A stretch of DNA of 64,000 nucleotides from Marsupella aquatica (Eukaryota; Plantae; Marchantiophyta), in contig OZ316899.1 in assembly GCA_973895155.1 (NCBI GenBank), forward strand, positions 5,149,241 to 5,213,240, read 5' to 3'. Below are positions 9,821 to 25,900 of this stretch, piece after piece. The translations under genes and the position numbers were made by a program. The notes beneath the pieces are model-generated. The model worked only from the letters and a program-made list of their open reading frames with translations, searched no databases and was not told where the DNA came from. Every line of letters starts with the position of its first letter. Position 1 is the first letter of the stretch.

Positions 9821-12800
9821 GAGATTGCGGAGTGGCTAGAGTTTCAAAGGTATGCCCTCCACACGATGGAGCCGCGGGGTGAGATATCCGCTGCCTAGGT
9901 GATCTAGGTTAAGAACTACTGGCCTAGGAAGTGGGCTTCTTTCTTCGTGAAGAAGTTCCACAAAGAGATGGAGCGACGGAGGAAAACCTTGTACCTCGGG
10001 GGGAAGGCGTATCTCACAAGCCACATCGAGATCACTATCAAGTGGTACGCCCATTTTGATCGACGAACCCTCCCAAGGTGCAACAAGCCCAAACCCACCC
10101 CGGCTAGATGGGTCTTCCCGGCTCAGGAGAGGCGGCCACAACCCAAGAGCCAAAGTCCAGCACCTGTGGTGTCCCCCCCAACCCCACAAACAACTGTTGA
10201 GGCACCTTCTTCTATGCCGGACTCGGTGGTTATTGCAACCCTGGATGCCCAAAACCAGGCCCGTGCAATCACAGCCAAGCGGGTTGAAGCTGGCCCCAAA
10301 CCAAAGGCCGTGATTCCGGAGGGGACCTCGGTGCCCTCCACAATTGTACGAGCAGGTCCCCTTTTTTGTTCCGGAAACCCCTCCCCCTCTACTCTTACCA
10401 CCCCGGGGCTGGACGTGACAGCTCTGGCCTCTACCCGAGTTGAGGTCTGTCCCTGCCCAAACCCGACTGGGCAGAGCTTGGTGAACCCAAAACTCTTTGC
10501 ACTGGGCAGTATTTGAATGGGTTGCTGGGCGACTTCTCCCAACAGGTTGGTCGGGACATGGGGGAGTTCATGGCCCACAAGGTGGCCTACTTCTTCAGCC
10601 AAGAGCTGGTGGCAACGGTGAAGGCAAGGCAGGCTCAAGCCAAAGCCGTGGCGAAGGTTGAGCGGTTGGGCGGAGGCAACCCAACTATTAGATGAAGCCT
10701 TAAGCCAAGATACCAAGCTACAACTTCTCCGGCCTCAGCTTACGACCGCTCTGGCCCAGGTCACCAAGGCTAAAGCCAAGTTAGCCTTGGCCATAAAAGT
10801 TGGAGCCGGAGCCGGAAAGGATGCCAAAATCTCACGGCTCCGGGCCCAGATTGATAGCTTTAAAGGGAAAGTCATTATTTGGCAGAAGAACGTAGAGGAG
10901 GCCGACGCTCAGGCCCAGAGGGATGCAGCAGAGGTGGATGCCCTGAAAGCAGAAGTGGCATGGCTTCTACAGGAAGCTACTAAGCAGGACCAACTGGTGG
11001 CGCAACTGACAAGCAACGGGCAGCAGTTGGAAGAGGCGTGTCAAGAGGCCGCGGAGGAGACAAATGCGGTAAAGCAAGAGGACGAGTTTCTCCTGGACCA
11101 AGTCCAGATCCTTAGGCAAGACGCCGACCAGATGAGGAGACAACGGGACGGCCGCTCCAAGTCCAACTTGGGTGGGTCTGGCAAACGTGCCAGACATTAG
11201 CGGCGCGACAAGTTTAGAATAGAGTAGGTTTAGCTAGGGAGGTCAAACACTGAAGACAAGCGCCAAAACTAGTTAGTGGCGCTGTCCTATTTGACCAAAC
11301 TTCTTTTAGCATAGAATCTTAGGATAAGACACGCCGTTTTGAGGCCTGGCACTAGCTGCATTTAGGGTAGACTAGATTCAAGCACGTGACCGTTCCAGGC
11401 CACGGTTCTTAGTTAGTATTTAGTGCACCCCCTGGTAGAGGCAAGGGGGGGAATTTAGGTTTAGAATTGGGTATCCGTAGGATGTGCAGGGAGTCCCGAC
11501 CTTAGTGAATAATAGAGCACCAAGGAGTGAGTGTACAACTAAGCTCATTGAGCAAGTGCGGAGCCGGGCTCCATTGTAGTGTATGCCTTCCTGCCGTTGG
11601 GCTTGTTTATTCCCAAAGAAGTCGAGTCAACTGTGTATACGTGTATGACGGATTTTGAAGTAAAGTCTTTCCCCATCATTTCCTTTGTGTAAACCGAGAT
11701 TGTATGTTGTGGAATCTGTTGTAGTCATAAATCTTGTATACGGGTAGAGAGCGCTCGGTCAAATGCATTATATGAGCTGTGCACGGGGTGACGGCTGCGG
11801 ATAGTGGTTGCGAGCCTGGGTTAGATACCCTATCATTGGATCCGGATTGGAGGCGGACAGCACAAAGGCTTAGAAGTCCTTAAGCCGGGGTCGATCCCGT
11901 TATCGACTTAAGGTACATTCCGGCGGCAAAACACAAAGCATACGTGTGATGCGTGTAAGAATAAGATCTGATGCGGTTAGCATCAAGTTTCAGGAATAAG
12001 TACCGTTTGCACGTCCCTCCTTGCCCAAAACCTCAATACTAATAGAGCTTATGGCCGCCTCAGCCAAAATCCGTGTAAGGACGGATCTTTTGGCATGACA
12101 CCACAACAGAGAGGTCAAGACATAACCGGTCCTAGAGCCAAACAGGACAATCCGATTACATGCTACAGGTGTGGAACTAAAGGACACACACAAAAGGTAT
12201 GTCAAGCCCCTGCCCACTTAGTAGCACTTTATAAAAAGAGCTTAGCACAACTGGAATTTGAAACTCATGGAGCCTTCATTGAATCTGCTGAGATTTTACC
12301 TGAAATTCACTTGGTAAGTCAAACCTCTACCACGAACAATTTGGACTTCTGCATAGTTGACAGTGGGACAACCCACACCATTATGCAAGAGAGAAAATAC
12401 TTTAGTAAAATAATTCCCTCTCAAAGATGAGTTACTACAATACTGGGACAACACCAGCCCAAGGAGGAGATGGCCCTACCATAGTAATTCTACCAAAAGG
12501 AACAACTATACATATAACAGCAGCAATATATGCCCTGAAAAGCCACAAGAAACCTACTCAGCTTCAAGGACATCTGGGCCAACAACCTGCACACACACAC
12601 TAATATGATCAATACAAAGGAAGTGTTGCACATTATGGCTAAAACACCTGCTAGAAATGAAGTGAAAGAAACCTTGATAGCCTACCCTCTGGGATACTAT
12701 GCCACAAGAACACAAAGTTACCATGTTTCCATACGACCTCCCTCAATCACGGACACATGGCATCGGAGACTAGGCCACCCAGGCACCAGTATGTTCCATA

Positions 12801-13675
12801 GAATTATCAAGGACATGCAGGGGATACCAAACGGGGGTTTGTATGGTGCGAGGAAACAGGAGATATTGACAGCGAGGTTAATGGTTGCTAGCGAGGTAAA
12901 ACTAATGGTCAGAGTGGCAAATTGGGAGTATAGTGAGACTTCTACAACAGAAATGAATCTTTTTTCCAGAATGGGATCATACAATGTTATGTCCAGCGAG
13001 GTCGCTAGCCTTCAATCATTGACAAACCATATGAATAAACACAAGCTAGTAAAACACCAGGCGGATATGAAAAGGCATAGTGAATGAATCAACTCAGATT
13101 TCAAACCCGTTTCGAAGTCATATTTCCAAAAAGTGTACTGCCTCCAATACTTTGTCAAAACTGACAGTAAGTGAGTAAACTGTCAAGGGTATCGTTCTAT
13201 TCCCTCATAAAATCATAAGTCACTTGAATGACTTTCATCCGACTCTATATCATTCCTACTACTAGTATTGCTCTGGTCACTACTGAAATCCCGATCAGTT
13301 GACTCAGCAGACTCATCAACATATTGTTTAACAAGGCATGCCTCATCGTCAACAAAAGGCAAGCAATATAAATTTTGTCTGGCGCCACGATGTGACCTAC
13401 GACCTTTGCCTTCCCAGGAGATTACAAAAGCATCATCCAACTGAATTGTCGACTTCTCTGCATAGAAAGACAGAGTAAATGTCTTATGAGGAGAAACAAT
13501 GCAAGATTCTTCAATCTTCCTTCAAAGCCAAAATCTCTCTTCAGAAAACCAGTCGACACGAGAATCTCTGAAATCATGAAAACAATGAGAGCACTATCAA
13601 TGAAATATCCAATTGAAAGACAATAGCCAATTGATTAAAGCAAAGGGATCTGGTATAAGCGAGAGGACCAGTACA

Positions 13676-16600
13676 TTACTCCAGGTCAAATTCATCATCC
13701 CCATCTTTTGCATCAAGAACATTAGGAGCCCCATCTTTGTTTTTTCCACTCTTTGATCCTGCAAGAGAAAATTCATCCTCTGAATTGAAGTCCTCCAATG
13801 TTTCAGTGAGGTCTTCAATTTTCTTGTGTCTCTCAAGAACACTCTTCAATGCCTTCTCTGCAGCACCATGGAGAACATCCCTATCCTTGACCCCAACAAC
13901 AAACCTCCCGGAGAGTTCTCCAGCTGAAAATGAACTGCCATATCCAATATTCCAATCAAGCACAATGTCTCTAGGCTTTGTGAGAAGCTCCATCACAGCC
14001 TGCATGAATCCAACAGACAACCGACAAGAACCAGAAAAAGCTAACTCTGCCTTGGTATCCCTTTTTGGATAACAAAAACTCAACATCATCTTATGTGATG
14101 CATCTTCAGACGTTGCCAAAGGGACATACTTCGGGTCTTTTGGGATCTTCCCATTGAATTCCACTCGACAAAAGACATCCAGGCTTAAGTTGCAAACCTG
14201 GAAAAGAACAAAAAAATGTCAATTAATGAATCCAGGAAGGCTAGCGAGATCGCTGTCAAAACAACATACTAAACCATGCAAATTTTACACAAATCTCACC
14301 TCAATGTTCATGTCTGGCATCCACATTGGGGACCCCAATAAACCGTGGTACTTCCAAAGGTGTTTAAATTTGTTCCTCTGTTCAACAGCAGCAAAAATTT
14401 GATTTGTGTGGTGAAATTCTCCACTGTGGAGAACGGCCACATACCCATCATCGGCCAACATGGGCCTCATCACTCCAAAGAAATAGTAAGGGAGCTTCTC
14501 AACCCAGACATTCCATGGGGGAACGTCCACATCGGTAACACGAGGTCTCAGCCCAGTCGGAAGAGCTATGAACCCTAGATGGGCACCGGTCCTAGTGTAA
14601 GGCTTCCCATTGATTTTTAAGGGATTCGGGTGTTTGGAAAGCTCCGAAAGCCATTGATCCCCCTCCCCCATCCAAGAAGGTCGAACCTTCTTCATACTTA
14701 TTGAGTCAGCCGTCAAGCGCAGATTACTCTTTGCAAGGAAATGTCTCCTTCCATCCAACTGGAGTCCACAGAGCCTCGGGACACCCTCTCGGATTGACAT
14801 TTCTTCCTCATCAGAATCTGACAACACTTGAACCTTTCTCTTCTTCTTCAACCTCTGGGACCCTGACTTATCACCTCCCGGTTTAGTCACAATTTCAAAA
14901 TCGGGAGACTCAGGCTCAACAAGATCCTCCTGGCGACCATTAGTCATAGTCTGAACACTCTCGGAACCCAAAGACTTCCTCCTTTCTGGATACAAAAAGC
15001 AACCTAAGAGCCTCAGGATATGTCATAAACTTAATCAGAATAGCAGCTTGGGAGAGGTAATAGAAGTAAGCTTCGGAGAGATAAGAGTACTTACTTTTCT
15101 TTCCAGAAATCATAGAGCCGTCTTTTGATACCTCCTTGGCAACATCCCTCTTCAATTTCCGAGGGTGGCTCCTATCAACAGTTGGTGCCACCCCAAGGCA
15201 TGCCTGCTCCATCGACACATAGCCAGCAATTTCTACTTCTGGGTTGCACAATTTAGATTCACTAATAAAGAATTCTGGGACCAAGCCACGATTGATCTTT
15301 TGAAGCGCAACTTTCTCTGTCACATCACATGTCAGTGACCAATTCTCCAAATCTAAATACCAGGGACAATGCAGCACCTCCCATTCACTTATCTTCCGCA
15401 AGGGTTCAATGTCCTCAATAGGGTACATCGAGTACTCCCCAAACTTCTCACAACCAAAATCATCTCTTGCATATTGCGCCCATTGAGAGAAACATGTCGG
15501 ATAACACCACCAAAAAGATCTATTTGCTACCTCCCAATCAACAAAAAACCTATAAACATATCTTTTTGCCCTCCGTCAAAATGCAGCAATGTCAATCTTC
15601 TCCCCAACTTTCGGGTTCCAGATGCTCTTAAAGAACCTTACCTTAACCCGCTGAAGGGAAATCCTCAAACTCATCATCAATTTCAACAAGGAGGGATGCC
15701 TGACTATTCTCTAGGGAAGAAAGAATTCTAGATTCAGGGACAGTGACAATAATCTCAGAGATTGCTTCACTTAATAAGCACCTCGCAATGGACTCTACCT
15801 GTTCCCGGGTTGCCCATCGATGCAACCAGAGCTTAGTCTCACTATCCAAAAATTGAGATGGGTGGAAATATTGTTTACGCAACTCTGGTCTGCACTGTGC
15901 TTCAAGAAGAGTGCAATGGAGTTGTGGACTCAGAGAAGTTACCCCGGTGAAAAGCCTTGCACGATCAAGGCCACACAAAACATTCCCTCTCCCCTTATCA
16001 TCCGTCCGCTGAGCTTCCTTCCTTTCTTTCTCACAATAATTGTGCATCTCAACACATTTCTTGAAGAAATCCCCAAAGTCTGGATTCACAAAGCGGGGAA
16101 AACTTTGGAACTTTGACATTCTAGTCAGAGAGTTGCTCCTTCATCATATCTCGAATTGCAATGTCCTTTGCAGCTTTTGACAGAGGTTCACCAAGTTCCT
16201 CCTTTAGTGCAAACTTCTTGAGTAAGTCAGCAGTTTGTGAAGCTATGTTTGCCGCTGAAAGAATATAAATACATGCATCTAAGGTCATCTGCTTCAAATA
16301 CCACGACGACTTCTTCACATTTTGCATCTTCTGCTGAAATAACTTGAAATTCTCTGGATCAATTAAATCTTTGTAAACTGAGAGGTCTGTGCGCAAAATC
16401 TTCTGGACTCAATCAGCTTCCAGCACCCACAAATTTTTGAAATGGCATTGTGTCAACCTTACAATGAGGACAGAATTCAGAAAACAACAAGAACAAATCA
16501 TGCACGAAAGATGGAGGAAAAAGATCAAATGTGTCAAAGATCTTCTCACCGGTTGAGAGCATGCATTGCAGATTCAATCTGCACGAAAGTATCCTTCTCT

Positions 16601-17250
16601 CCTTTGAATATCTTTGAGACAACTCGAGGATGATATTTGACATCGTGAGGATTCTCAGCAACAAGCAGGTTCCACGAATAGAGACGGTGATTGCCTTCAA
16701 AAACACAAAACATTTTATCCTTGAGCACAGCAAAATTAGGATGCGAATCACACTCCCTCTCGAAAGCTTCATTCTGCACCAACCACATTGGATCCCAGCT
16801 CTGTCTAATTGTGTCGTTGAGAAACTGCACGTCGCCATTATCATTTGTCATTTGCACATAAAAATGAGGCGCATCCTCAATGTACCCTTGAGCCCGGAAC
16901 TCATTCTTCAAAGTCTCAATTGCATTTGAATCTGTCTGAAGAGACCTCACAAGCTGCATGTTCTACATTCGACACAATGGAATTCAAGGGGGAACCAGTG
17001 GATACCCAAATTTTTCCAGCCCAAACTGGTAAAGATGGCGGTTAATGACAACTGAGAAAGGCTCGGACTTGGCAGAATCCATCGAAGGTGGCACAATATT
17101 CATAGGATCAACAAGCTTTCGCCTCCTTGGAGTCTTCAGCCCCGAAGCAAGTGCTTTGTGGCTTGAAGAACTCCTGGTCTCTCGACATTGAGAGGCAGCT
17201 GATTGTGAGGCAACGGACAAAATAGACTCAGGGGATGCAAAAGTTGCCAT
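13676..17250 (-). pseudogene. MULE cargo gene: ParB/Srx-like N-terminal domain plus C-terminal beta-class N4-C/N6-A DNA methyltransferase-like domain (disrupted)
   Basis: ATG at 17250. IPLCRM...FCVFEGNHRLYSW carries the ParB-type GxxR motif. Introns 16458-16549 and 14198-14299 restore the frame. Motif IV/VI-like HLGFIALPTG...LADDGYVAVLH precedes motif X/I-like LLTKPRDIVLDWNIGYGSSFSAGELSGRFVVGVKD. Several in-frame stops and frameshifts; a further acidic exon at 13213-13457 is possible. Confidence 0.75.
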
Positions 17251-17708
17251 CGACTGATAAAGAGAGGAGAACCACGTAAACGGAATACAAGGAATTGGTA
17301 CGGTGATTTGCAAAGGAATCCAAAGTCACATGTGTTAGGAATCCTAAGCAAGATATCGGGGGAATCCAAAGTAACCTACAGTGTATCTGACATTGACAGG
17401 GAATATCAGTATTTAACACCTTGATGCCAAAGATCCCTCTGGTGCTAACTAACATTAACAAAGCATCAGTTAACATTAAGAATGAGTCTAATTACTACTT
17501 AACAACAACTTGTTCGGATGAAATGTACATTTGACTCCAACGGTTTGAGTCAATTACTCTATAGTTGACCAACTTGGGTTGGGTGTCCGTTGAAAATAAC
17601 CATTCTCAAACAGTACAAAATATGCCGATGGATGTAGAAAAGGAAGTTTTTATGAAATTTACTCTTCAAAATGAAGTTAACCCTTCCAACGGTAATATAA
17701 TTTTGTAG

Positions 17709-17744
17709 TTAGATGACTGATTAGATGACTGATTAGATGACTGA
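17709..17744 (+). repeat. 12-bp tandem repeat x3 in the MULE divergent intergenic region
   Basis: TTAGATGACTGA three times. Confidence 0.9.
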
Positions 17745-18556
17745 TAAGGAAAAATAGGCAAACTCCATACTTTGTTTAAGACATATATTTAGACAGTTTT
17801 TTGCCAGTGACATCGTTGGCCAAATTAGTGCTAATGGGGTAGGTTAAAAGTGATGTATTGTTTTTTAAATGAACCCTTAATTCTTTCCTAAATTCTAAAA
17901 TACTTGACAGAAGTCAAACAAACTTAACAATGTTTAATGTGTCAACATAACGTTTTGGAAATATATTTGTTTCGATATCCCTCAATTTAATCCCAAACTC
18001 AAATAAACGTCTACCCTAAATTTTTGGGTGCATCAGGCTAGCAACATCGCTGGCCTGAATCAGGGTTTCTAAAAGGTTTAATTTATGGGACATCTTCGAA
18101 TCCTCTCCCTTGTTAATGTCAATTTGTGAGTGAAAATCATATTATAGAATCACTAAAATATAGTTGGTTTAAGAATAGAGTCCATCTTAAACACAGAAAA
18201 ATTTCCCAAATTATGTCTAGCAAGGTCGCTAGCAAAAACCGTTGTTTAACACGAAGCTCCAAGTTCAAGAATCCTCCTAATGTACTCCAAGTTTAGTAAA
18301 CGTCCTAGAACAACCCAAGATATCCTTGTTGTCAACAGAAAACAGTCAATGTTTTGGACAATTACAAGATATAACTTTGGATTATATGGAGACCTTTATG
18401 ATAGCAAATTTCGGCCAGCGATATCGCTAGCAATAATTCATTTCTGGAAGGTATTAGAGTCGTTGAAGTTTTGTCGTATATGCAACATTAAAGTTATATC
18501 TATATATTCATCCATGATGTTTGTGACGTTTGGGTTCTTGTCTTGGTCCTCATTTG

Positions 18557-21500
18557 ATGGCTCCGAGTGTCATCTTCTGGCGTCAGAGCACTGGAGACAT
18601 TGTTACTCTTTCATCTATGAGAAAGATCACTAATGTGGCCGAGGCCTTTCTTTTGACAAGATTTGGGCTCAATAACTGTGATTTCATTTCGAGATTGTTC
18701 TTTCTTGTTTCACTTCATGGATCAAGGAAGGACGAATTAATTTCAGGAACTCTACTTGGTGAAAGAGTTTGGGAGGTTGCTTCCGGAGATGTGGTGGAGG
18801 TTATATCAGGCAAAGATGAGTTTCCAGAGCCTTTCCAGAACCCTCGAGGAAAAGTGCTTGTAGACCTGGACTCTCCCCTGGGGAGAGAAACGAATGTCCA
18901 GGCCTCTAGTTTTGAGTTTACAACTCTTGAGGGTACTAATTCTGTTTTTGGAAGTTGTTCTACAAAATTGGAAGTAGATACTGCTCTTCCAAGTGCTTTG
19001 GGATGTCATCTTTTGCAGAAAGTCTACAGAATTGGTGCGCTTGAAGCATTTTTGAGCATTACTGGGGCAAGTGAGCTAGAAAGATTTAGAAGAGATGTCT
19101 CGCGGGTTGATGTCCAAGTTGATCGTCTTCCAACAAGTTACAATGGAGACAAGGTATATGAGCTTCCTCCAGTGGAGTCAAGATTTGGTCACGGTCAAGG
19201 GCTTCTTGTCATGGACTGCAACAATGATGGCTACCCTTGGACCCGGTTGGTCACTACTTCGGCTAACCTGAAGCCACATAATCACTGGTCTGTTTTCAAG
19301 GTCCGTTGCAGTGGTGTTGTGCAGTGCCAAAAGTTGAATTGTTCAAGGTTCAAGGAGACAGGAATGAGGAATGAAGCGGCATTTCCTAGAAGATCACTAA
19401 TGACCGATGTCTTCTAGTCGGGAAATCTGGTTCCGGAAGGAGGTTTGGTTTGTGGCTTTTGTGACGAGAGACCTTATTGTGTCCGGCCTTGTCCAACAAT
19501 GATGTTTTATGTTTATGCAAAGCCAACTTTGGACTCTCATGTCTCAAAACACATGTCTAGACTCGCAGTGCATATGGGAGTTCATGATCATTCGATCCGA
19601 ACGGGGAAGTGTTGAGTTGCAAAAAAAAGGCGAAAGATGTTATTCAAGAAGTTCAGTCAGCTCATCCCTTGGCAACCCCTTCCCGTGTGAAGAATATTTC
19701 AATAGGTACATTGATATCTCTTCTCCACCCTGAGGCATGTCACGATCTTTCAAAAGAAGAGGAGGTGGAATTGTGGAACTCGATGAAAGTTGTGTCCTCG
19801 CCGGCAAAATTCCATGCAACTTTCCGGAGTGTTAAAATTGGGAATCCCAAGAAAGGTGAGTTGGATTCGCTTTGTGACATGCAAATGCGCGTGAGATTTC
19901 CATTTGTACAATGTTTCCTGTTCCCTGGCCAGACTGGCAAGTCCATTCGAGCGCATGTATTCAAGATGAGTACCAAAGGTCCCGGTTCTGGAGTTGACAT
20001 TCTCAATCGGATGCAAAAAGGTGGAACTTTAGAGGGAGCTTGGGTGAGTTTTGACGCGATGCACAGAATAACTACTGGTTGGTTAACTTTTAGTGCTCAC
20101 GTATACGATCACACTTATCAAGTAAAGCTACATCGTCAGTTATCAGTGTTTTCCATCAGTCGACCTGATATCAGTCGCCACGTCATCTTAGAGAGGCCGC
20201 CAAGTTGGGGCGCCAAAGAAAAATGTGAAAATAAAACGTTTGCGCATCTCAGCTGACCTCGTCGAGATTGGCGTAAGGCCAAAAAAAATGAAAAAAAATT
20301 AATTTGTTTTTCCAAAAATTCTCAAAAATAATAAATTCCCCAAAAATAATTTTTTCACTATGGGTGTCCGTACCGTACGGACATCGCTTCTCGGCGAGAC
20401 CCGCCGAGATAGTCCGATGTCCGTGCGGTACGGACACCGAATTTTGTCAGAATTTGTTTTTAGATTTTTTTTTTAGAGAATTTTTGAAAGAAAAAATTTT
20501 AATTTTTTTTCTTCGTTTTTTTTGTCCTTACGCCGATCTCGGCAAGGTCAGCTGAGATTGACTCAATCTCAGCTGCCCCAGCTGAGATCCTTACGCCGAT
20601 CTCGACGAGGTCAGCTGAGATGCGCGAAAGTGCGAAGGCCCTATCTCAGCTGCTCAGCTGAGATTCAGAAATTTCAAGGCGACCAAACTGATAATTGATG
20701 ATCCTCGCTACCCCACACTTATCGTGCTCTTTGTACTATCTTCACTTGTGAATTGAAAGCCAAGGATGTTGAGTCACTGGAAACTGCATGGCGTTTAATG
20801 TTGGAAGTTGTTGCTGAGAATGGTATTTCCAATGTAAACATAGCTGGTTTTATGGCTGACAATGCTGAAGCTGGATGGATCGCTGTGAGAAATGTTTTCT
20901 TTGATGGTGTTCGTCTCCCTGATGCATTCCATTTCTTGCAGTCACTAAGACGTCATACCATGGAGGAAATTCGTGAAGGGAAACACTCCGAACACTACCA
21001 AATGTGGGAGAAATTTAGGAATGCACCCTCATATGTTCAAGCTTACAGGGTGGCTAACGATATTCAAGAGTGGTGGAAGTGTGGGAATTGTCACCGTGGG
21101 AAATTGAGATCTTTGCAAGGTTGGATCGCTTGGTGGGTTGTCCGATGGTGACAATGGGGAAGCTTCTTCAGACTGGTAAGTAAACTCATTGTTTTTGGCT
21201 AGCGATGTCGCTAGCATTCCTTTTGTGTACAAATGTTATCTTCAAATCAAGTATGTGCCTCCCAGTGATTGTGTTTGTTTTTGTCTGGACTTCAGACTCA
21301 AACAGCAAAGGAGTCAGCGTTGATGCCAAATTGTACTGGAGCCAAATCTGTACATGGTTCAATGAGAGCTTGCCAAATGAAGAAGAAGATTGGACTGATC
21401 GAAGCTTGTGAGCTTGATCAAAATCGTGCTGGTGGGCAGATTGTTGCCTTTGCTGCGTACATTGAAGGATGCCACAGGGGACATGGACCTACCATATTTG

Positions 21501-22901
21501 AACTTGCATATAGGAATGCAGATACACTAGGATCCCTTGATGCTTTTGAGAAAGCAACCAATCTTCTGCTTGAATCATCTCCAAAATATGAGTTCCATCG
21601 CACTCAACCACTTCATGGAGATCTTTGCACAAAGTCCGGAAAATGAAAAGGCCAAGCTTTGGCTAGAGTTGGTGCTGAAGACTCTTATTGACATGATAAG
21701 GTGATGCGCACGGAGGCGGTGACAAGAGGCGTACATCCAAGAAATTTAGATTCTGATTTCCGGAGTGTCAATGTCGTGGAAGAGAGCGACAAGTTGAAGG
21801 AAAATTTGGGCATACTAGCTCCATCCTTCAACATTCTCTAGTTGTCCAGATCCATCCGTCGTGATTCTTCTTTCCGATAACGAAGGGAATGACACTGAGA
21901 GCTCAGGAGATGACACTTTTGAAATTCCTAAGCCATTGTCACAACAACATGTATCTCCTGTCCGTCCAGAGGAACCAGTTTATGTTTCACCAAGGAGAAT
22001 ACCTGCGGTAAATGGAGTTGATGTCCCATTTGGTACTTGGCACTGAAGGCGGTGCGGGAAAGGAAATGGTCCAGTGTGCAATGGGTCTATGGACAGGACC
22101 ATTTCTGGAAGAGATGAGTGTCGAAACTTAATCAAGGAAGTAGGTTTTCATACTCGGTCTTGCGGTGTGGTTGGGGTTGCAATCCATGGTTTGAGGATGA
22201 CTTCACCACATCCTCAACTCTTATACTTCTGCCCAAACAATGTCTGCCACAAGACCTGGGGGCGCAAGTCAATTGCCCAACTTCCCTTAGTACCCTCAAC
22301 TCTAAAAGTTCTTCGAGGGACAGACTTAACTCCTCCTGAAATCAGCTTCTTGATTGGCTTGGGTTTTCAGATTGATGGTCTCTATTACATGGATTGCAAA
22401 CCAGATGGCAGTGTTGCTCCTCCAAGTAGCGTGGAACTTTGGATTGATGTTAACTCTTTTCCAGAAAAGGTTGATGTAACTATTTGAATAGATGATTGAG
22501 GACGCAAAATGGGAAGGGTGCTTGTCAACGTTTCGACTTCACTGCAGAACTTGTTAAAAGGATTCAGTCTGCAAATGAAGAGCAAATGAGGATTGTGGCT
22601 TGTGAAAAGATCATCCAAGGTAACGGATGGGGAAGACAGTTTTTGATTGCGACGCATGAAAACAACCCTAGTAAATCTAGTAAATATTGGATTCAGTTGT
22701 GCGTCTTCCCATGTTGCTCCTGTGAGGATTTCTATAAGCGGCATTTGCATGGAAAGCCTTACATGTCTTGCAAACATATCCTTAATTTGGGTTTACAAGA
22801 ATGTTTACCATTTGAACCTAGAGACTTCGGATGTAGTCAAGCAGCCAATTTTAACTGTCGCTGAAGTTTCCAATCTGATCCAAAGGGGAGTTGAGGTTTG
22901 A
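18557..22901 (+). pseudogene. MULE transposase with GCM/WRKY-like Zn domain, DDE core and C-terminal SWIM finger (disrupted)
   Basis: DGYPWTR...CSGVVQCQKLNC...CGFC...C...HMGVHDH (GCM-like); WVSFDAMHR and FMADNAEAG (D, D); AFHFLQS; CCSCEDF...CKHIL (SWIM). Intron 21176-21295. Frame is restored when the 20120-20714 insertion is removed (DHTY|RALCTIFTCELKA). Confidence 0.85.
20120..20714. mobile_element. Non-autonomous MULE-like MITE (595 bp) with strong internal fold-back structure
   Basis: 9-bp TSD ACACTTATC at 20111-20119 and 20715-20723. Subterminal inverted match ATC(G/A)TCA(G/A)TTATCAGT. Internal inverted repeats at ~20240-20278 and ~20589-20628; central hairpin at ~20363-20437. Confidence 0.88.
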
Positions 22902-25900
22902 TATTATCCACTTTAGAGTGAGGTTTGGTTTTAATAAGGTTTTCATCGGTTTTTAATATATATGTAAGTACCGTTGGGAGTAGACTTTTTTGTGTGTTGG
23001 TAGGGAGAGATGATATTTACACTCCATATGAAGTGCCCTTTAATTTATTTATAAAACACCAGATATTGGTTCATCAGTTTTGCTAGCGAGGTCGCTAGCT
23101 ATATTTTTGAAAAGTTTTGTAGGTTCATGATTTGGACTGTGGTTTGTTACTCATTGAGAAAACTATTAGTGACAGAGTCACATACCCTGATAAGGTAGGA
23201 TATCATGTCTTTACAGACTTGGCTTTTTTTTACAGTTGGCAACTCTCCCTGAAATCACTGTCAACCTTTTATGTTGGTTATGGTGCCAATTTTGTGTGTT
23301 TATCTGAGATACTGATGACTCCCAATCTCCAGGCCCATCATTTAAATTGCAAGTAAATCTCCTTGCCAAGTGCTTTGGTGATGATATTTATATCTATTTC
23401 GGATTGTCCAATTTGGTTTAAAAAAAAGTTACATTGACATACTTCACTCGAAAGGTTTCTTAAACAAACATTAGTCATTCAAATATGAACAGACTGTTAG
23501 ATGGGTTTTTGCTAGCGAGGCTTGCTGTTACTAGCGGCCAACAAGTCCAAACTTTGGTTTGAGCAAAAAATCACCCATTTCAAGGAATTGTTTTACTCGT
23601 AACAGCAAAAAAATTACTGTTACGAGCAATTTTTTCCTGTTTCCTCGCATGGTAGTCATACCCATACCAAACATTGTGCACCCAAGATCCCTAAAGGATC
23701 CATGCCTTGCCTACTCACAAGGCAAGATGATTACAAGACCAGCGCCAAACAATATACAACATAATATACCAATTGAAACTTCTTGGAGAGAATACATGGT
23801 GATGTATGCAGCCCCGTACAACCTCCTAGTGGCCCATTTTGATTCTTCCTAGTGATTATTGATGCTTCTTCAAAGTGGTCACAAGTATCACTCTTGTCAA
23901 CCCAAAACTTAGTTTTTTCAAGGATACTGGCTCATATCCTAAAGTTGAAAGCACAATTCCCAGAGAATCCAATTACAACTCTCAAGGTTGATAACGCTGG
24001 CGAGTTTACATCTCAGACATTCACAGATTTATGCACATCAGCAGGGATAGACCTACAATATCCTATGGCTCACGCCCATTTTCAGAAAGGGATTGTTGAA
24101 TCCCTCATTAAGAGACTACAGATTATAGCCAGACCTCTCCTAATGCAAACAAGCCTTTCTATGTCCACATGGGGCCATGTTGTAGTCCATGCGGCCGCCC
24201 TGCTCCATTATAGACCATCCACATTCAACTCCCGCACACCTCATCACCCTGCATTTGGGTCCATCCCAAATATATCTCACCTAAGAATATTTGGCTGTCA
24301 AGTCTTGGTACCAATCATGGGCCCCAAATGCACCAAGATGGGGCCCCAGAGACAGAAAGGTATCTATATCAATTTTTACTCAACCTCTATCATATGATAC
24401 CTGGAACCAACAACAACGATGTATTCAAAGCAAGGTTTGCAAACTGCCACTTTTATGAGGACGTATACCCTACATTAAGTACAGAGTAGAGCCCAAACAA
24501 GATTACTAACACTGAAGTTCATTGGCAAACACAATCTGCATTTTGGAATGACCCAAGGACTTCTCAAGCAGGTACAGAAGTCCAGAGGAGGATCCATCTT
24601 ACCAAAATGATGGAACAACTACCCGATTCCTTTGCAGACGCGGCAAAGGTGACTCGCTCACATGTACCGGCAGTGAATACACCAGCCCAAATCAAACTCG
24701 CTGGCCCACAAGCAACTGAGGCTGCACCACTAGCTAAGAGGGGACGCCCACCAAGGGCCAATGATTGCCAACCATACCAAAGACGGCCTATGGCCATAGC
24801 AACTCACGATCAACATTCACCAATAACTGCATCAACCCAACCCATCAGAAATATTGAGAACAACGGGATTGCCATCAATTACCAATATACGGGCCAAGTT
24901 TGGGATCGGTTCCCCATTGTGAAAGCCTGATATTTAATTTGACCACTACCTTGCTTTGACCATGCTCTTTGGACCCTATTTTGTCAATCTCAGCTTGAAC
25001 CCTAAACCTAAACCCCCAAATGATTGATCCCATGAATCCGGTTTTCCACCCCCACAAAACCCTATTATCCATTATTAGTCCAATGACCCATCCCATATCT
25101 GATACCATACGCTACAAAACTTCCGATGTAAACTATTTTGGACCCCTCCTCCAAATGTCCGATATTTTCAATATTGCAATTTGAGTTACAAACACTAACG
25201 GATGTTCCTATACTTAATGCTACGCAAACTCCAATATATTTTAGGTTGGACTATCCCATAAAAAATACATTGGACCCATGATATTCACTTGCCGTAGCGT
25301 CTTAGTATCCGATGAAATGAAAACAGACAAATTATGCAAAACATCCAGTAATGGATTTATTGATGGTTGCAACAATGGAAAGTCCACTAGGTGTCCAATT
25401 GTCCATATCCAATGTCTGAAGTATGGGAAAGTGCAAAGCAAATGACATTGGACGCCTCATTTTTCCGCATCAAAATTTCTGAAGGGGTCCGATGTTGTTA
25501 GGATTGGAAAAAGGGCCAAAAATGTACTAATGGTCTGTTGAGCTTGAGTTAGGATGCTAGTCTTGGATGGCCTAGATCTTACAAGTTACTTACCAAGGCA
25601 TTTGGTTGCTTGTGCAGATAGTGAGAACCGTTGAGCAACAGTGGTGTTAGGGAGAAAGTGCCGCTTCATATGGGAGTTGTTGCTGGAGGTGTAAGAAGTA
25701 CCAAGTTGCTTGCTCAAGGAGTTCCGTGTAGGTGTTCAAGCAGAAAGGGCACTTAGGCGAGGGTGTTGGGATTGGTGAGGCCACTGGGTGGCAAGGTCCA
25801 CCACTCAAGGCCTCACCTTCATGAATTCCTGAAATTCTGTTTTGAGAATTTTGATGTAGGGATCTGGTCTCTCTTGCAAAGAACCTTTTACATCAAATTT

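Follow-up and report, generated by a model that had tools for sequence, protein, structure and literature searches.

To our knowledge, transposon self-recognition and the escape from silencing are understood in molecular detail for very few systems, of which VANC is the main one. The VANC anti-silencing proteins of the VANDAL Mutator-like elements (MULEs) of Arabidopsis have an experimentally shown function and are associated with short, family-specific motifs (PMC5735166, PMC10398659). A survey of Ectocarpus has described an accessory protein of 1,104 residues in Sola1-1_Ec32, which combines a ParB-like region with an N4/N6 methyltransferase and is encoded opposite the transposase, and has suggested that such proteins may bind to the element that encodes them and modify it epigenetically (PMC12477816). 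In the genome of the red alga Bostrychia, the Plavaka protein PAG3 joins a ParB-like N-domain to a 2-oxoglutarate (2OG) oxygenase and is found beside inverted-repeat arrays; its ParB-like domain was recognised by remote homology only (HHpred best match 7BNR at E 0.29), and self-binding has been proposed for it (bioRxiv 10.1101/2025.02.11.637652). Fusions of ParB with methylases are also known in bacteria, such as Bce_0392 of B. cereus (PMC5512222), and eukaryotic methyltransferase clades have been derived from phage ParB-terminase loci (PMC4738411). Here we deal with a transposon of the liverwort Marsupella aquatica, found at positions 12833-23663 of a stretch of 64,000 nucleotides (the window) of contig OZ316899.1, which harbors, alongside a transposase gene, a second or cargo gene and a set of dispersed palindromes.

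The element is one decayed member of a divergent DNA transposon family of high copy number that is probably Mutator-like. Its cargo gene, as modelled from intact relatives, specifies a protein of around 1,100 residues that comprises a ParB/Srx N-domain, a helical region, a helical or disordered linker and a beta-class methyltransferase fold. A first interpretation, made from the letters of the window and referred to here as the sequence-only reading, had proposed a self-recognition system in which the cargo protein loads at the element's own palindromes and marks or protects its chromatin. The two folds, the pairing of the genes and the element-specific palindromes bear out the descriptive part of that proposal; the marking of chromatin by methylation has become unlikely. 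The reading that we tentatively prefer, with a chance a little short of even, is that the cargo protein would bind the palindromes as a dimer via its ParB-like module, and that the element would thereby recognise its own copies.

For algal transposons, an accessory protein that binds or modifies its own element has been proposed before (PMC12477816; bioRxiv 10.1101/2025.02.11.637652). Four points are new with respect to the literature: the host is a land plant, the carrier is Mutator-like, the catalytic motif has been lost throughout the family, and there are element-specific palindromes that follow the family tree; no paper was found on the cargo family in liverworts, ferns or MULEs. The family brings together an accessory gene of prokaryotic type that is deeply conserved and found also in ferns, and private, fast-changing palindromes in liverworts. 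If the protein does read the palindromes, it would represent a second, independent solution to transposon self-recognition as well as an example of a ParB-type module at work on eukaryotic chromatin.

The algal Sola1 proteins resemble the cargo product by description, in that they have around 1,100 residues, an N-terminal ParB-like region, a C-terminal methyltransferase of the PF01555 type and a position opposite the transposase, an arrangement seen here in the window and in six related loci. Unlike the algal case, the host is a land plant, the carrier is Mutator-like rather than Sola1 and the catalytic motif is degenerate; dispersed, family-specific palindromes such as those of the present family are not mentioned for the algal proteins (PMC12477816). 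PAG3 is likewise a ParB-like transposon accessory protein that is accompanied by inverted repeats and recognised by remote homology only. It differs in harboring a 2OG oxygenase where the present family has a pseudo-methyltransferase, in belonging to EnSpm/Plavaka rather than to a Mutator-like carrier, and in its repeats, which form tandem arrays beside the gene, whereas those of the present family are dispersed through every non-coding compartment. In common with VANC, the cargo product is a MULE accessory protein paired with family-specific motifs that lie in non-coding DNA and diverge between related families. However, the VANC fold is unrelated, and the VANC motifs are short direct repeats, whereas the present sites are long palindromes known from sequence alone.

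As in the prokaryotic and phage ParB-methylase fusions, a ParB/Srx domain is followed by an amino-methyltransferase, and the ESM-Atlas clusters closest to the methyltransferase part all carry PF01555, most of them being from phages. In contrast to those fusions, the cargo gene is split by spliceosomal introns and encodes a long helical middle and a degenerate motif IV, and 50,697 phage records searched by tblastn with a full-length homologue gave no match. The structures nearest to the N-module (Z 4.3-7.0) are those of KorB-OB of the IncP plasmid RK2, ParB-parS and Noc-NBS (PDB 8qa8, 6sdk, 7bm8, 7ng0), and KorB-OB provides the further parallel of a ParB-family protein of a mobile element with palindromes scattered over that element, promoter regions included. 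Unlike KorB, ParB and Noc, the cargo family gives no profile match, contains a helical insertion of about 40 residues in the N-domain, has no ParA partner and resides in eukaryotic chromatin; of their cytidine triphosphate (CTP)-binding motifs, GxxR alone is visible.

The cargo gene and its predicted protein

The two genes of the element are arranged head-to-head, the cargo gene on the minus and the transposase gene on the plus strand, and both are pseudogenised. The cargo gene extends from about 17256 to 13679 and is interrupted by introns; the window was compared, one exon at a time, with the continuous open reading frames (ORFs) of relatives. The first coding exon (16549-17256) specifies the ParB/Srx-like domain, with an IPLCR strand lying between two stops and the GNHR motif at 16684-16695. 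The helical region is encoded by one or more middle exons (15063-16456), the first part of which matches the region that aligns with KorB and PadC after the N-domain; two frameshifts and three stops fall here. A further exon (14291-14929) covers the N-terminal half of the methyltransferase fold, with ALPT at the position of motif IV (14555-14566) and a conserved VPxW (14513-14524), and the last exon (13679-14212) contains the motif I-like loop DWNIGYG (13937-13957) and an acidic tail.

The N-domain has a conserved family pattern (IPLCR, LK..F..GY, FYV, WDP.W, MF.V.DGNHRL.AW, H.RV), within which the DGNHR of the GxxR motif is near-invariant in 44 family members and appears in the window as EGNHR (16684-16698). 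It was this GNHR, near the cargo N-terminus, that the sequence-only reading had assigned to the ParB/Srx type, and structure comparison places the domain among the same neighbours. An AlphaFold2 (AF2) model of the 137-residue ParB exon, with a predicted local distance difference test (pLDDT) score of 88.7, was compared with 48,161 PDB representatives, the nearest being PadC (Z 4.9), KorB (4.3), Arabidopsis Srx (4.0, at 27% identity) and Spo0J, followed by pNOB8 ParB-N, human Srx, Atu1540 and the serine kinase SerK. Across the top neighbours of this and the following comparison, 72-84 residues are aligned over the ParB N-domain at a root-mean-square deviation (rmsd) of 2.5-3.1 A, with Z values of 3.2-4.0 for Srx. 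Foldseek with the same model returned nothing below E 0.001, though ParB members held the top ranks. When its candidates were re-compared, Noc reached Z 5.3, Caulobacter ParB 5.0, the B. subtilis complex of ParB with cytidine diphosphate (ParB-CDP) 4.9 and KorB 4.8, the Noc and ParB alignments comprising 81-84 residues at 2.5-2.9 A and falling exactly over the ParB N-terminal nucleotide-binding domain. Taken absolutely, the Z values of the exon model are weak, but the two aligners agree.

A model of full-length P0163, a homologue from the liverwort Riccia sorocarpa with pLDDT around 90 in its folded parts, gave Z 7.0 with KorB over 175 residues, where residues 110-440 lie on KorB 52-233 (the N-domain together with the DNA-binding part) at an rmsd of 5.8 A; PadC followed at Z 6.3 (131/132 residues aligned) and pNOB8 ParB-N at Z 5.8. 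On the strength of these models, and with modest Z values, the cargo N-domain is accepted as a ParB/Srx fold. A ParB-like helical DNA-binding part after the N-domain is likely, though the modelled match is loose.

A ParB/Srx domain could also serve a different end, as a nicking nuclease regulated by nucleoside triphosphate (NTP) that would aid excision, repair or replication, in which case the palindromes would be unrelated repeats. The B. cereus ParB-methylase and the DdrB-like domains of phages would be the models for this; several methylase-fused ParB/Srx domains are non-specific nickases or NTPases (PMC5512222), and the GxxR motif is retained in the cargo family. We nevertheless consider such a role very unlikely: an acidic nuclease motif could not be found, the DNA-binding part of KorB can be loosely superposed on the stretch that follows the N-domain, and the family-specific palindromes would be left unexplained.

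The C-terminus, which the sequence-only reading had described as amino-methyltransferase-like, is by its model unambiguously a beta-class N6A/N4C amino-methyltransferase fold with the motif order IV then I. The C-terminal 280 residues of the P0163 model match M.MboIIA (Z 16.3), M.BceJIV (15.5), CcrM (15.2), M.PvuII (14.5) and rotifer N4CMT (14.4), with M1.HpyAVI also among the matches at Z 14-16 and around 200 residues aligned. Foldseek on this domain gave E 2.7e-7 at a probability of 1.0, and the family profile found DpnA in the PDB at E 1.3e-6. The likeness to these enzymes, whose class includes the liverwort MpDN4MT1, encompasses the order of the motifs and the GxG of the S-adenosylmethionine (SAM) loop: motif I reads D-F-x-G-G-W-G in the family and DWNIGYG in the window.

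Motif IV of amino-methyltransferases, which is catalytic and acts on the flipped base, has the form (D/N/S)PP(Y/F/W). Unlike in the active beta-class enzymes, this motif has been lost from the cargo family, where the position is occupied by D-[ML]-P-[TS]-G, and from the window, which has ALPT; the aromatic residue is missing family-wide, and the window copy additionally lacks the Asp. Methyl transfer by the cargo protein is therefore judged unlikely from its sequence, as is the marking of chromatin by methylation. VPPW was considered as an altered form of the catalytic motif and rejected, since in the alignment it falls on the conserved Trp that these enzymes have after motif IV.

An active but atypical methyltransferase, directed by the ParB module to place N6-methyladenine (6mA) or N4-methylcytosine (4mC) on the palindromes, is a reading that we hold to be very unlikely indeed. 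The beta-class fold is complete (Z 16) with its GxG kept, algal relatives have been predicted to be active (PMC12477816), and liverworts employ beta-class 4mC methyltransferases in sperm, as in Marchantia, where there are two such host enzymes with a TSPPY motif (bioRxiv 10.1101/2021.02.12.428880). Set against this are the motif IV of the family, D-[ML]-P-[TS] with no aromatic residue (ALPT in the window), and the behavior of single sequences, which do not reach the Pfam threshold and are matched at the motif I end only, as seen repeatedly with PF01555, phrog_3008 and PRK13699.

The cargo gene belongs to a sizeable family. The 137-residue GNHR exon has 201 relatives among 1.84 billion protein representatives, 55 of them at E below 1e-10; most are single exons from eukaryotic contigs, and the long matches are hypothetical proteins of Riccia sorocarpa and of Adiantum ferns, the two genera from which all named matches come. 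With a family profile, 52 gene models are retrieved from Riccia. Over its full length the window gene is colinear with the Riccia proteins P0042 and P0163, and intact ORFs on three contigs (L001, L002 and L003) show the same colinearity, at 33-52% identity per exon. Intact homologues of ferns and of metagenome contigs are likewise colinear with it. A narrow-alignment scan of metagenomes yielded four contigs of 1.2-1.8 kb, which are too short for palindromes or context.

These relatives bear on the question of whether there is any system at all, rather than a gene captured passively in the manner of a Pack-MULE together with palindromes that are neutral amplified repeats. The window copy is dead and the family repetitive and decaying, as passive capture would have it. 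However, the same gene order and architecture are kept across 32-72% protein identity in at least ten loci with long intact ORFs, and the gene reaches the ferns. The ratio of non-synonymous to synonymous substitution (Ka/Ks) between two Riccia cargo copies comes to 0.42 overall and, for the ParB domain, to 0.25, and every relative has palindromes of the same design in a different sequence. Passive capture is accordingly disfavoured, and we regard it as extremely improbable.

At least 52 Riccia gene models of the cargo family are annotated as hypothetical proteins. Among the Riccia proteins P0151, P0171, P0203 and P0206, UniRef names are misleading, with cargo proteins called trimethylguanosine synthase or assigned a BRCT or PB1 domain, and the Cys-rich transposase named as 4Fe-4S ferredoxin-type. 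The fern homologue P0103 (Adiantum capillus-veneris, 1176 residues) has a C-terminal phosphatase domain of the NIF/FCP1 type (PF03031, E 2e-12), which stands where a recognisable methyltransferase end would be.

Palindromes of the window and of related elements

The 18-bp palindrome GCTAGCGA-NN-TCGCTAGC occurs seven times in the window at up to two mismatches (two copies exact, one with a single mismatch and four with two). All seven lie inside the element, against a chance expectation of 0.01-0.03, and the other 53 kb of the window, that is the part outside the element, contains none even at three mismatches; the seven element-confined copies of the sequence-only reading are thus upheld. The exact 8-nucleotide half-sites behave similarly, with 10/10 inside the element where 0.47 would be expected, and two of them are solitary and subterminal.

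From left to right, a solitary half-site GCTAGCGA (12887-12894, 55 bp from the left end) is followed by a palindrome in the left subterminal region, downstream of the cargo gene (12992-13009), and by another in the intron between the two methyltransferase-like cargo exons (14240-14257), both with two mismatches. Three copies lie in the intergenic region between the divergent genes, at 18037-18054 and 18216-18233 (two mismatches each) and at 18414-18431 (one mismatch). The two exact copies are found in a transposase intron (21198-21215) and in the right subterminal region (23082-23099), beyond which a second solitary half-site (23511-23518) lies 153 bp from the right end. The sites are hence all in non-coding DNA, distributed over both subterminal regions, the intergenic region (three copies), one cargo intron and one transposase intron. 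With an estimated 57% or so of the element being homology-supported coding sequence, hand arithmetic gives a chance of around 0.003 for 7/7 non-coding sites. Allowing for C-to-T decay in the search revealed no additional decayed palindromes within the element.

Position 14242, within the palindrome of the cargo intron, is C in all other genomic copies aligned to the window, giving the arm GCCAGCGA; both this variant and TCCAGCGA are also present within the window. The family consensus arm may be GCYAGCGA, which is near the CCAGCGA arm of the Riccia locus L006.

Ten related loci with useful context were compared, and their palindromes counted at up to two mismatches. Each contains 15-39 copies of its own type only, and the design throughout the family is one of arms of 6-10 nucleotides around a centre of 1-5 nucleotides. 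Written as arm and centre, the types are GCTAGCGA-NN in the window, ACTAACGA-NN in L003, TAACGG-NN in L001 and L002, AGCTAACG-N5 in L004 and L011, AGCTAGCG-N5 in L009, AGCTAGCT-N5 in L010, CAGCGA-N3 in L006 and CCGGCGGA-N in L005, L007 and L008. When every type was searched for in every locus, the resulting matrix was almost purely diagonal, with none shared across types. The sites in the relatives occupy subterminal positions, the divergent intergenic region, where they often form arrays with a period of 75-95 bp, and the introns of both genes.

The palindrome types also follow descent. Placed on the tree of the ParB exon, the palindrome classes require the minimum number of changes, which was matched by 0/200 label shuffles, and the window groups with L001-L003, all of which have an even, two-base centre. 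The sequence-only reading had suggested looking for co-variation of palindrome and cargo protein, and in this the palindrome types do follow the cargo tree; the transposase is inherited along with the cargo gene, however, and the binder is not singled out. The agreement with the tree shows the inheritance and turnover of a family-specific site, not which protein reads it.

Some neighbouring features of the related loci concern other elements or repeats. A DUF659 (hAT-like) neighbour in L003 was considered as a carrier from a second superfamily and set aside, as it lies beyond the last palindrome in convergent orientation and is uninformative. In L004, tandem arrays with a period of around 127 bp (L004:100-1170 and L004:17085-21780) contain a 47-bp palindrome of another kind, CTGGCGGAAAAGTAAGGAC..GTCCTTACTTTTCCGCCAG. 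Lying to either side of the Riccia element, these arrays are probably part of a different type of element that has its own palindrome. The intergenic region of L010 (L010:7492-9267) contains a second palindrome, TAGCGT-N3-ACGCTA, at a period of around 295 bp beside the main CTAGCT-N5 palindrome.

Candidate readers of the palindromes

Binding of the palindromes by the cargo protein is suggested because the sites are symmetric with long arms, because they are spread over the whole element rather than concentrated at its ends, and because KorB, ParB and Noc read palindromes scattered over their own replicon. In outline, a dimer of the accessory protein would sit on the element's own palindromes through its ParB-like module, and this self-recognition would most likely serve the regulation of the divergent promoter, the provision of accessible chromatin or protection from silencing, or both kinds of role, on the model of KorB at its OB operators or of VANC at its motifs. 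The methyltransferase-like domain would act not as a writer but as a non-catalytic part that binds DNA or SAM.

MULE transposases carry sequence-specific N-terminal domains, and the main rival to binding by the cargo protein is that the palindromes are sites of the transposase, read by its Cys-rich, WRKY/GCM1-like N-terminal domain, with a cis-regulatory or transposition-enhancing role and the cargo protein otherwise employed. We regard this as rather unlikely, yet as a serious contender. The cargo gene and the same transposase family stand head-to-head in L004, L005 and L008, and L009, L010 and L011, which were reached by way of the transposase alone, all contain a head-to-head cargo gene (3/3), so that transposase and palindromes are found together in all six of these loci and in the window; both half-sites and full copies are, moreover, present subterminally. 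The terminal inverted repeats (TIRs) themselves do not contain the palindrome, which would be unexpected of transposase sites, as would the way in which the sites fill introns and the intergenic region and show no clustering at the ends. Symmetric sites with arms of 7-10 nucleotides would also suit a dimeric helix-turn-helix protein better than a monomeric zinc finger. The Riccia loci L006 and L007 have a cargo gene and palindromes with no transposase homologue within 10 kb, though this is a weak argument, since non-autonomous copies would keep the sites.

Several points weigh against binding by the cargo protein. As transposase and cargo gene are co-inherited, co-variation cannot separate them and does not identify the reader of the palindromes. 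A recent preprint reports that the AtMu1 transposase, itself that of a MULE, activates its cognate copies in a sequence-specific manner (bioRxiv 10.64898/2026.08.24.746577). The window copy has only seven sites, as against the 15-39 of its relatives. The similarity to ParB is at the level of predicted fold only, with Z values of at most 7, and the modelled alignment with KorB is loose over the helical region. The comparison with ParB, Spo0J and Srx that the sequence-only reading had called for was in fact divided in its outcome: the structural neighbours are almost all ParB or Srx, and there is no sequence-profile match. Searches of Pfam, NCBIfam, PHROGs and the PDB with hidden Markov models gave no ParB match for the window exon or the full-length homologues, Pfam gave no ParB-clan signal for the 44 members of the ParB-exon family (a single DndB match stood at E 0.066), and the sole match of the ParB-exon family profile among PDB sequences was a spurious one to eL24.

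A more elaborate form of binding by the cargo protein would make it an NTP-gated clamp of the ParB type, loading at the palindromes and spreading from them, with a private "parS code" that shields or regulates the chromatin and with the dead methyltransferase fold as a sensor of DNA or SAM. This would be the first ParB-parS-like system on nuclear chromatin, and we rate it as improbable; NTP-gated clamping and spreading are speculative, with the GxxR motif as their sole support. The intact Riccia copies provide directly testable pairs of protein and site, to which the window copy stands as a decayed witness of the family.

Boundaries, transposase and decay of the window copy

The element of 10.8 kb is bounded by TIRs and flanked by an exact 9-bp target-site duplication (TSD), ATACCAAAC, whose copies lie at 12824-12832 and 23664-23672. 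The TIRs (12833-12863 on the plus strand and 23633-23663 on the minus) are imperfect repeats of about 31 bp that begin with GGG, the left one with GGGGG, and have an exact core of 15 bp in common. The host is a Ty1/copia pol gene (12095-12832 and 23673-24394) with zf-CCHC, gag_pre-integrs, rve and SH3_retrovirus domains. The gag zinc knuckle and gag_pre-integrs are found in the left flank and the rve integrase core in the right, which places the insertion point past the pre-integrase zinc-binding region but short of the integrase core. Excision in silico of the element and one TSD restores the copia frame (...QGIPN then IVHPRS...). As the frame reads through in this way, the insertion is genuine, and the TSD-bounded element stands as the sequence-only reading had drawn it.

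The transposase pseudogene (18530-22880, plus strand) has a Cys-rich N-terminal domain, a core homologous to the Riccia protein P0171 and to an ORF of L004, and a SWIM-like CxCx16CxH motif near its C-terminus (22715-22777). PF04434 (SWIM) has no match in the window transposase pieces, and Pfam at E up to 1 has none, PF10551 and PF00872 included, either for these pieces or for the intact ORFs of 511-587 residues in relatives. All ten of the named ESM-Atlas clusters closest to the transposase carry PF10551, the best score being 0.93, which is to be taken as a lead only. In the Riccia locus L005, the element has a 9-bp TSD, TTGATCCGG, and TIRs of around 70 bp that likewise begin with GGG. The transposase is thus probably, rather than provenly, a divergent Mutator-like enzyme. 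The earlier Mutator label is favored by the 9-bp TSD, which falls within the 8-11 bp of the superfamily, the GGG termini, the CxCx16CxH motif and the PF10551 clusters, and lacks a Pfam match even in the intact relatives.

Both genes of the window copy are broken, as had been claimed. The cargo gene contains in-frame stops at 16984-6, 16963-5, 16409-11, 16121-3 and 15576-8, and its reading frame shifts near 16064-16125 and again at 15656-8. In the transposase, a stop (19415-7) and a frameshift (19606-33) are joined by a nested insertion of around 596 bp, with more stops and one frameshift downstream. Contigs from four public sequencing runs of two organisms cover all 5.4 kb of the element that was compared, as short pieces of high depth that number in the hundreds and are 90-99% alike, and the element family is therefore a high-copy repeat. 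In many of these other genomic copies the extra base is absent at 15656 and at 16089/90 and the sequence is different at 15577/8 and 16122, which makes the breaks private to the window copy. A search for sequencing runs turned up none of RNA, and no transcripts or splice joints were seen among the contigs aligned to the element, which show the repeat family. The window copy is dead; anything acting on it would have to do so in trans.

The nested insertion that splits the transposase (20120-20715) is flanked by a 10-bp direct repeat, CACACTTATC, at a point where the relatives are continuous. It has long internal inverted repeats (20236-20278 against 20589-20631, 93% complementary) and looks like a nested element of the miniature inverted-repeat transposable element (MITE) kind.

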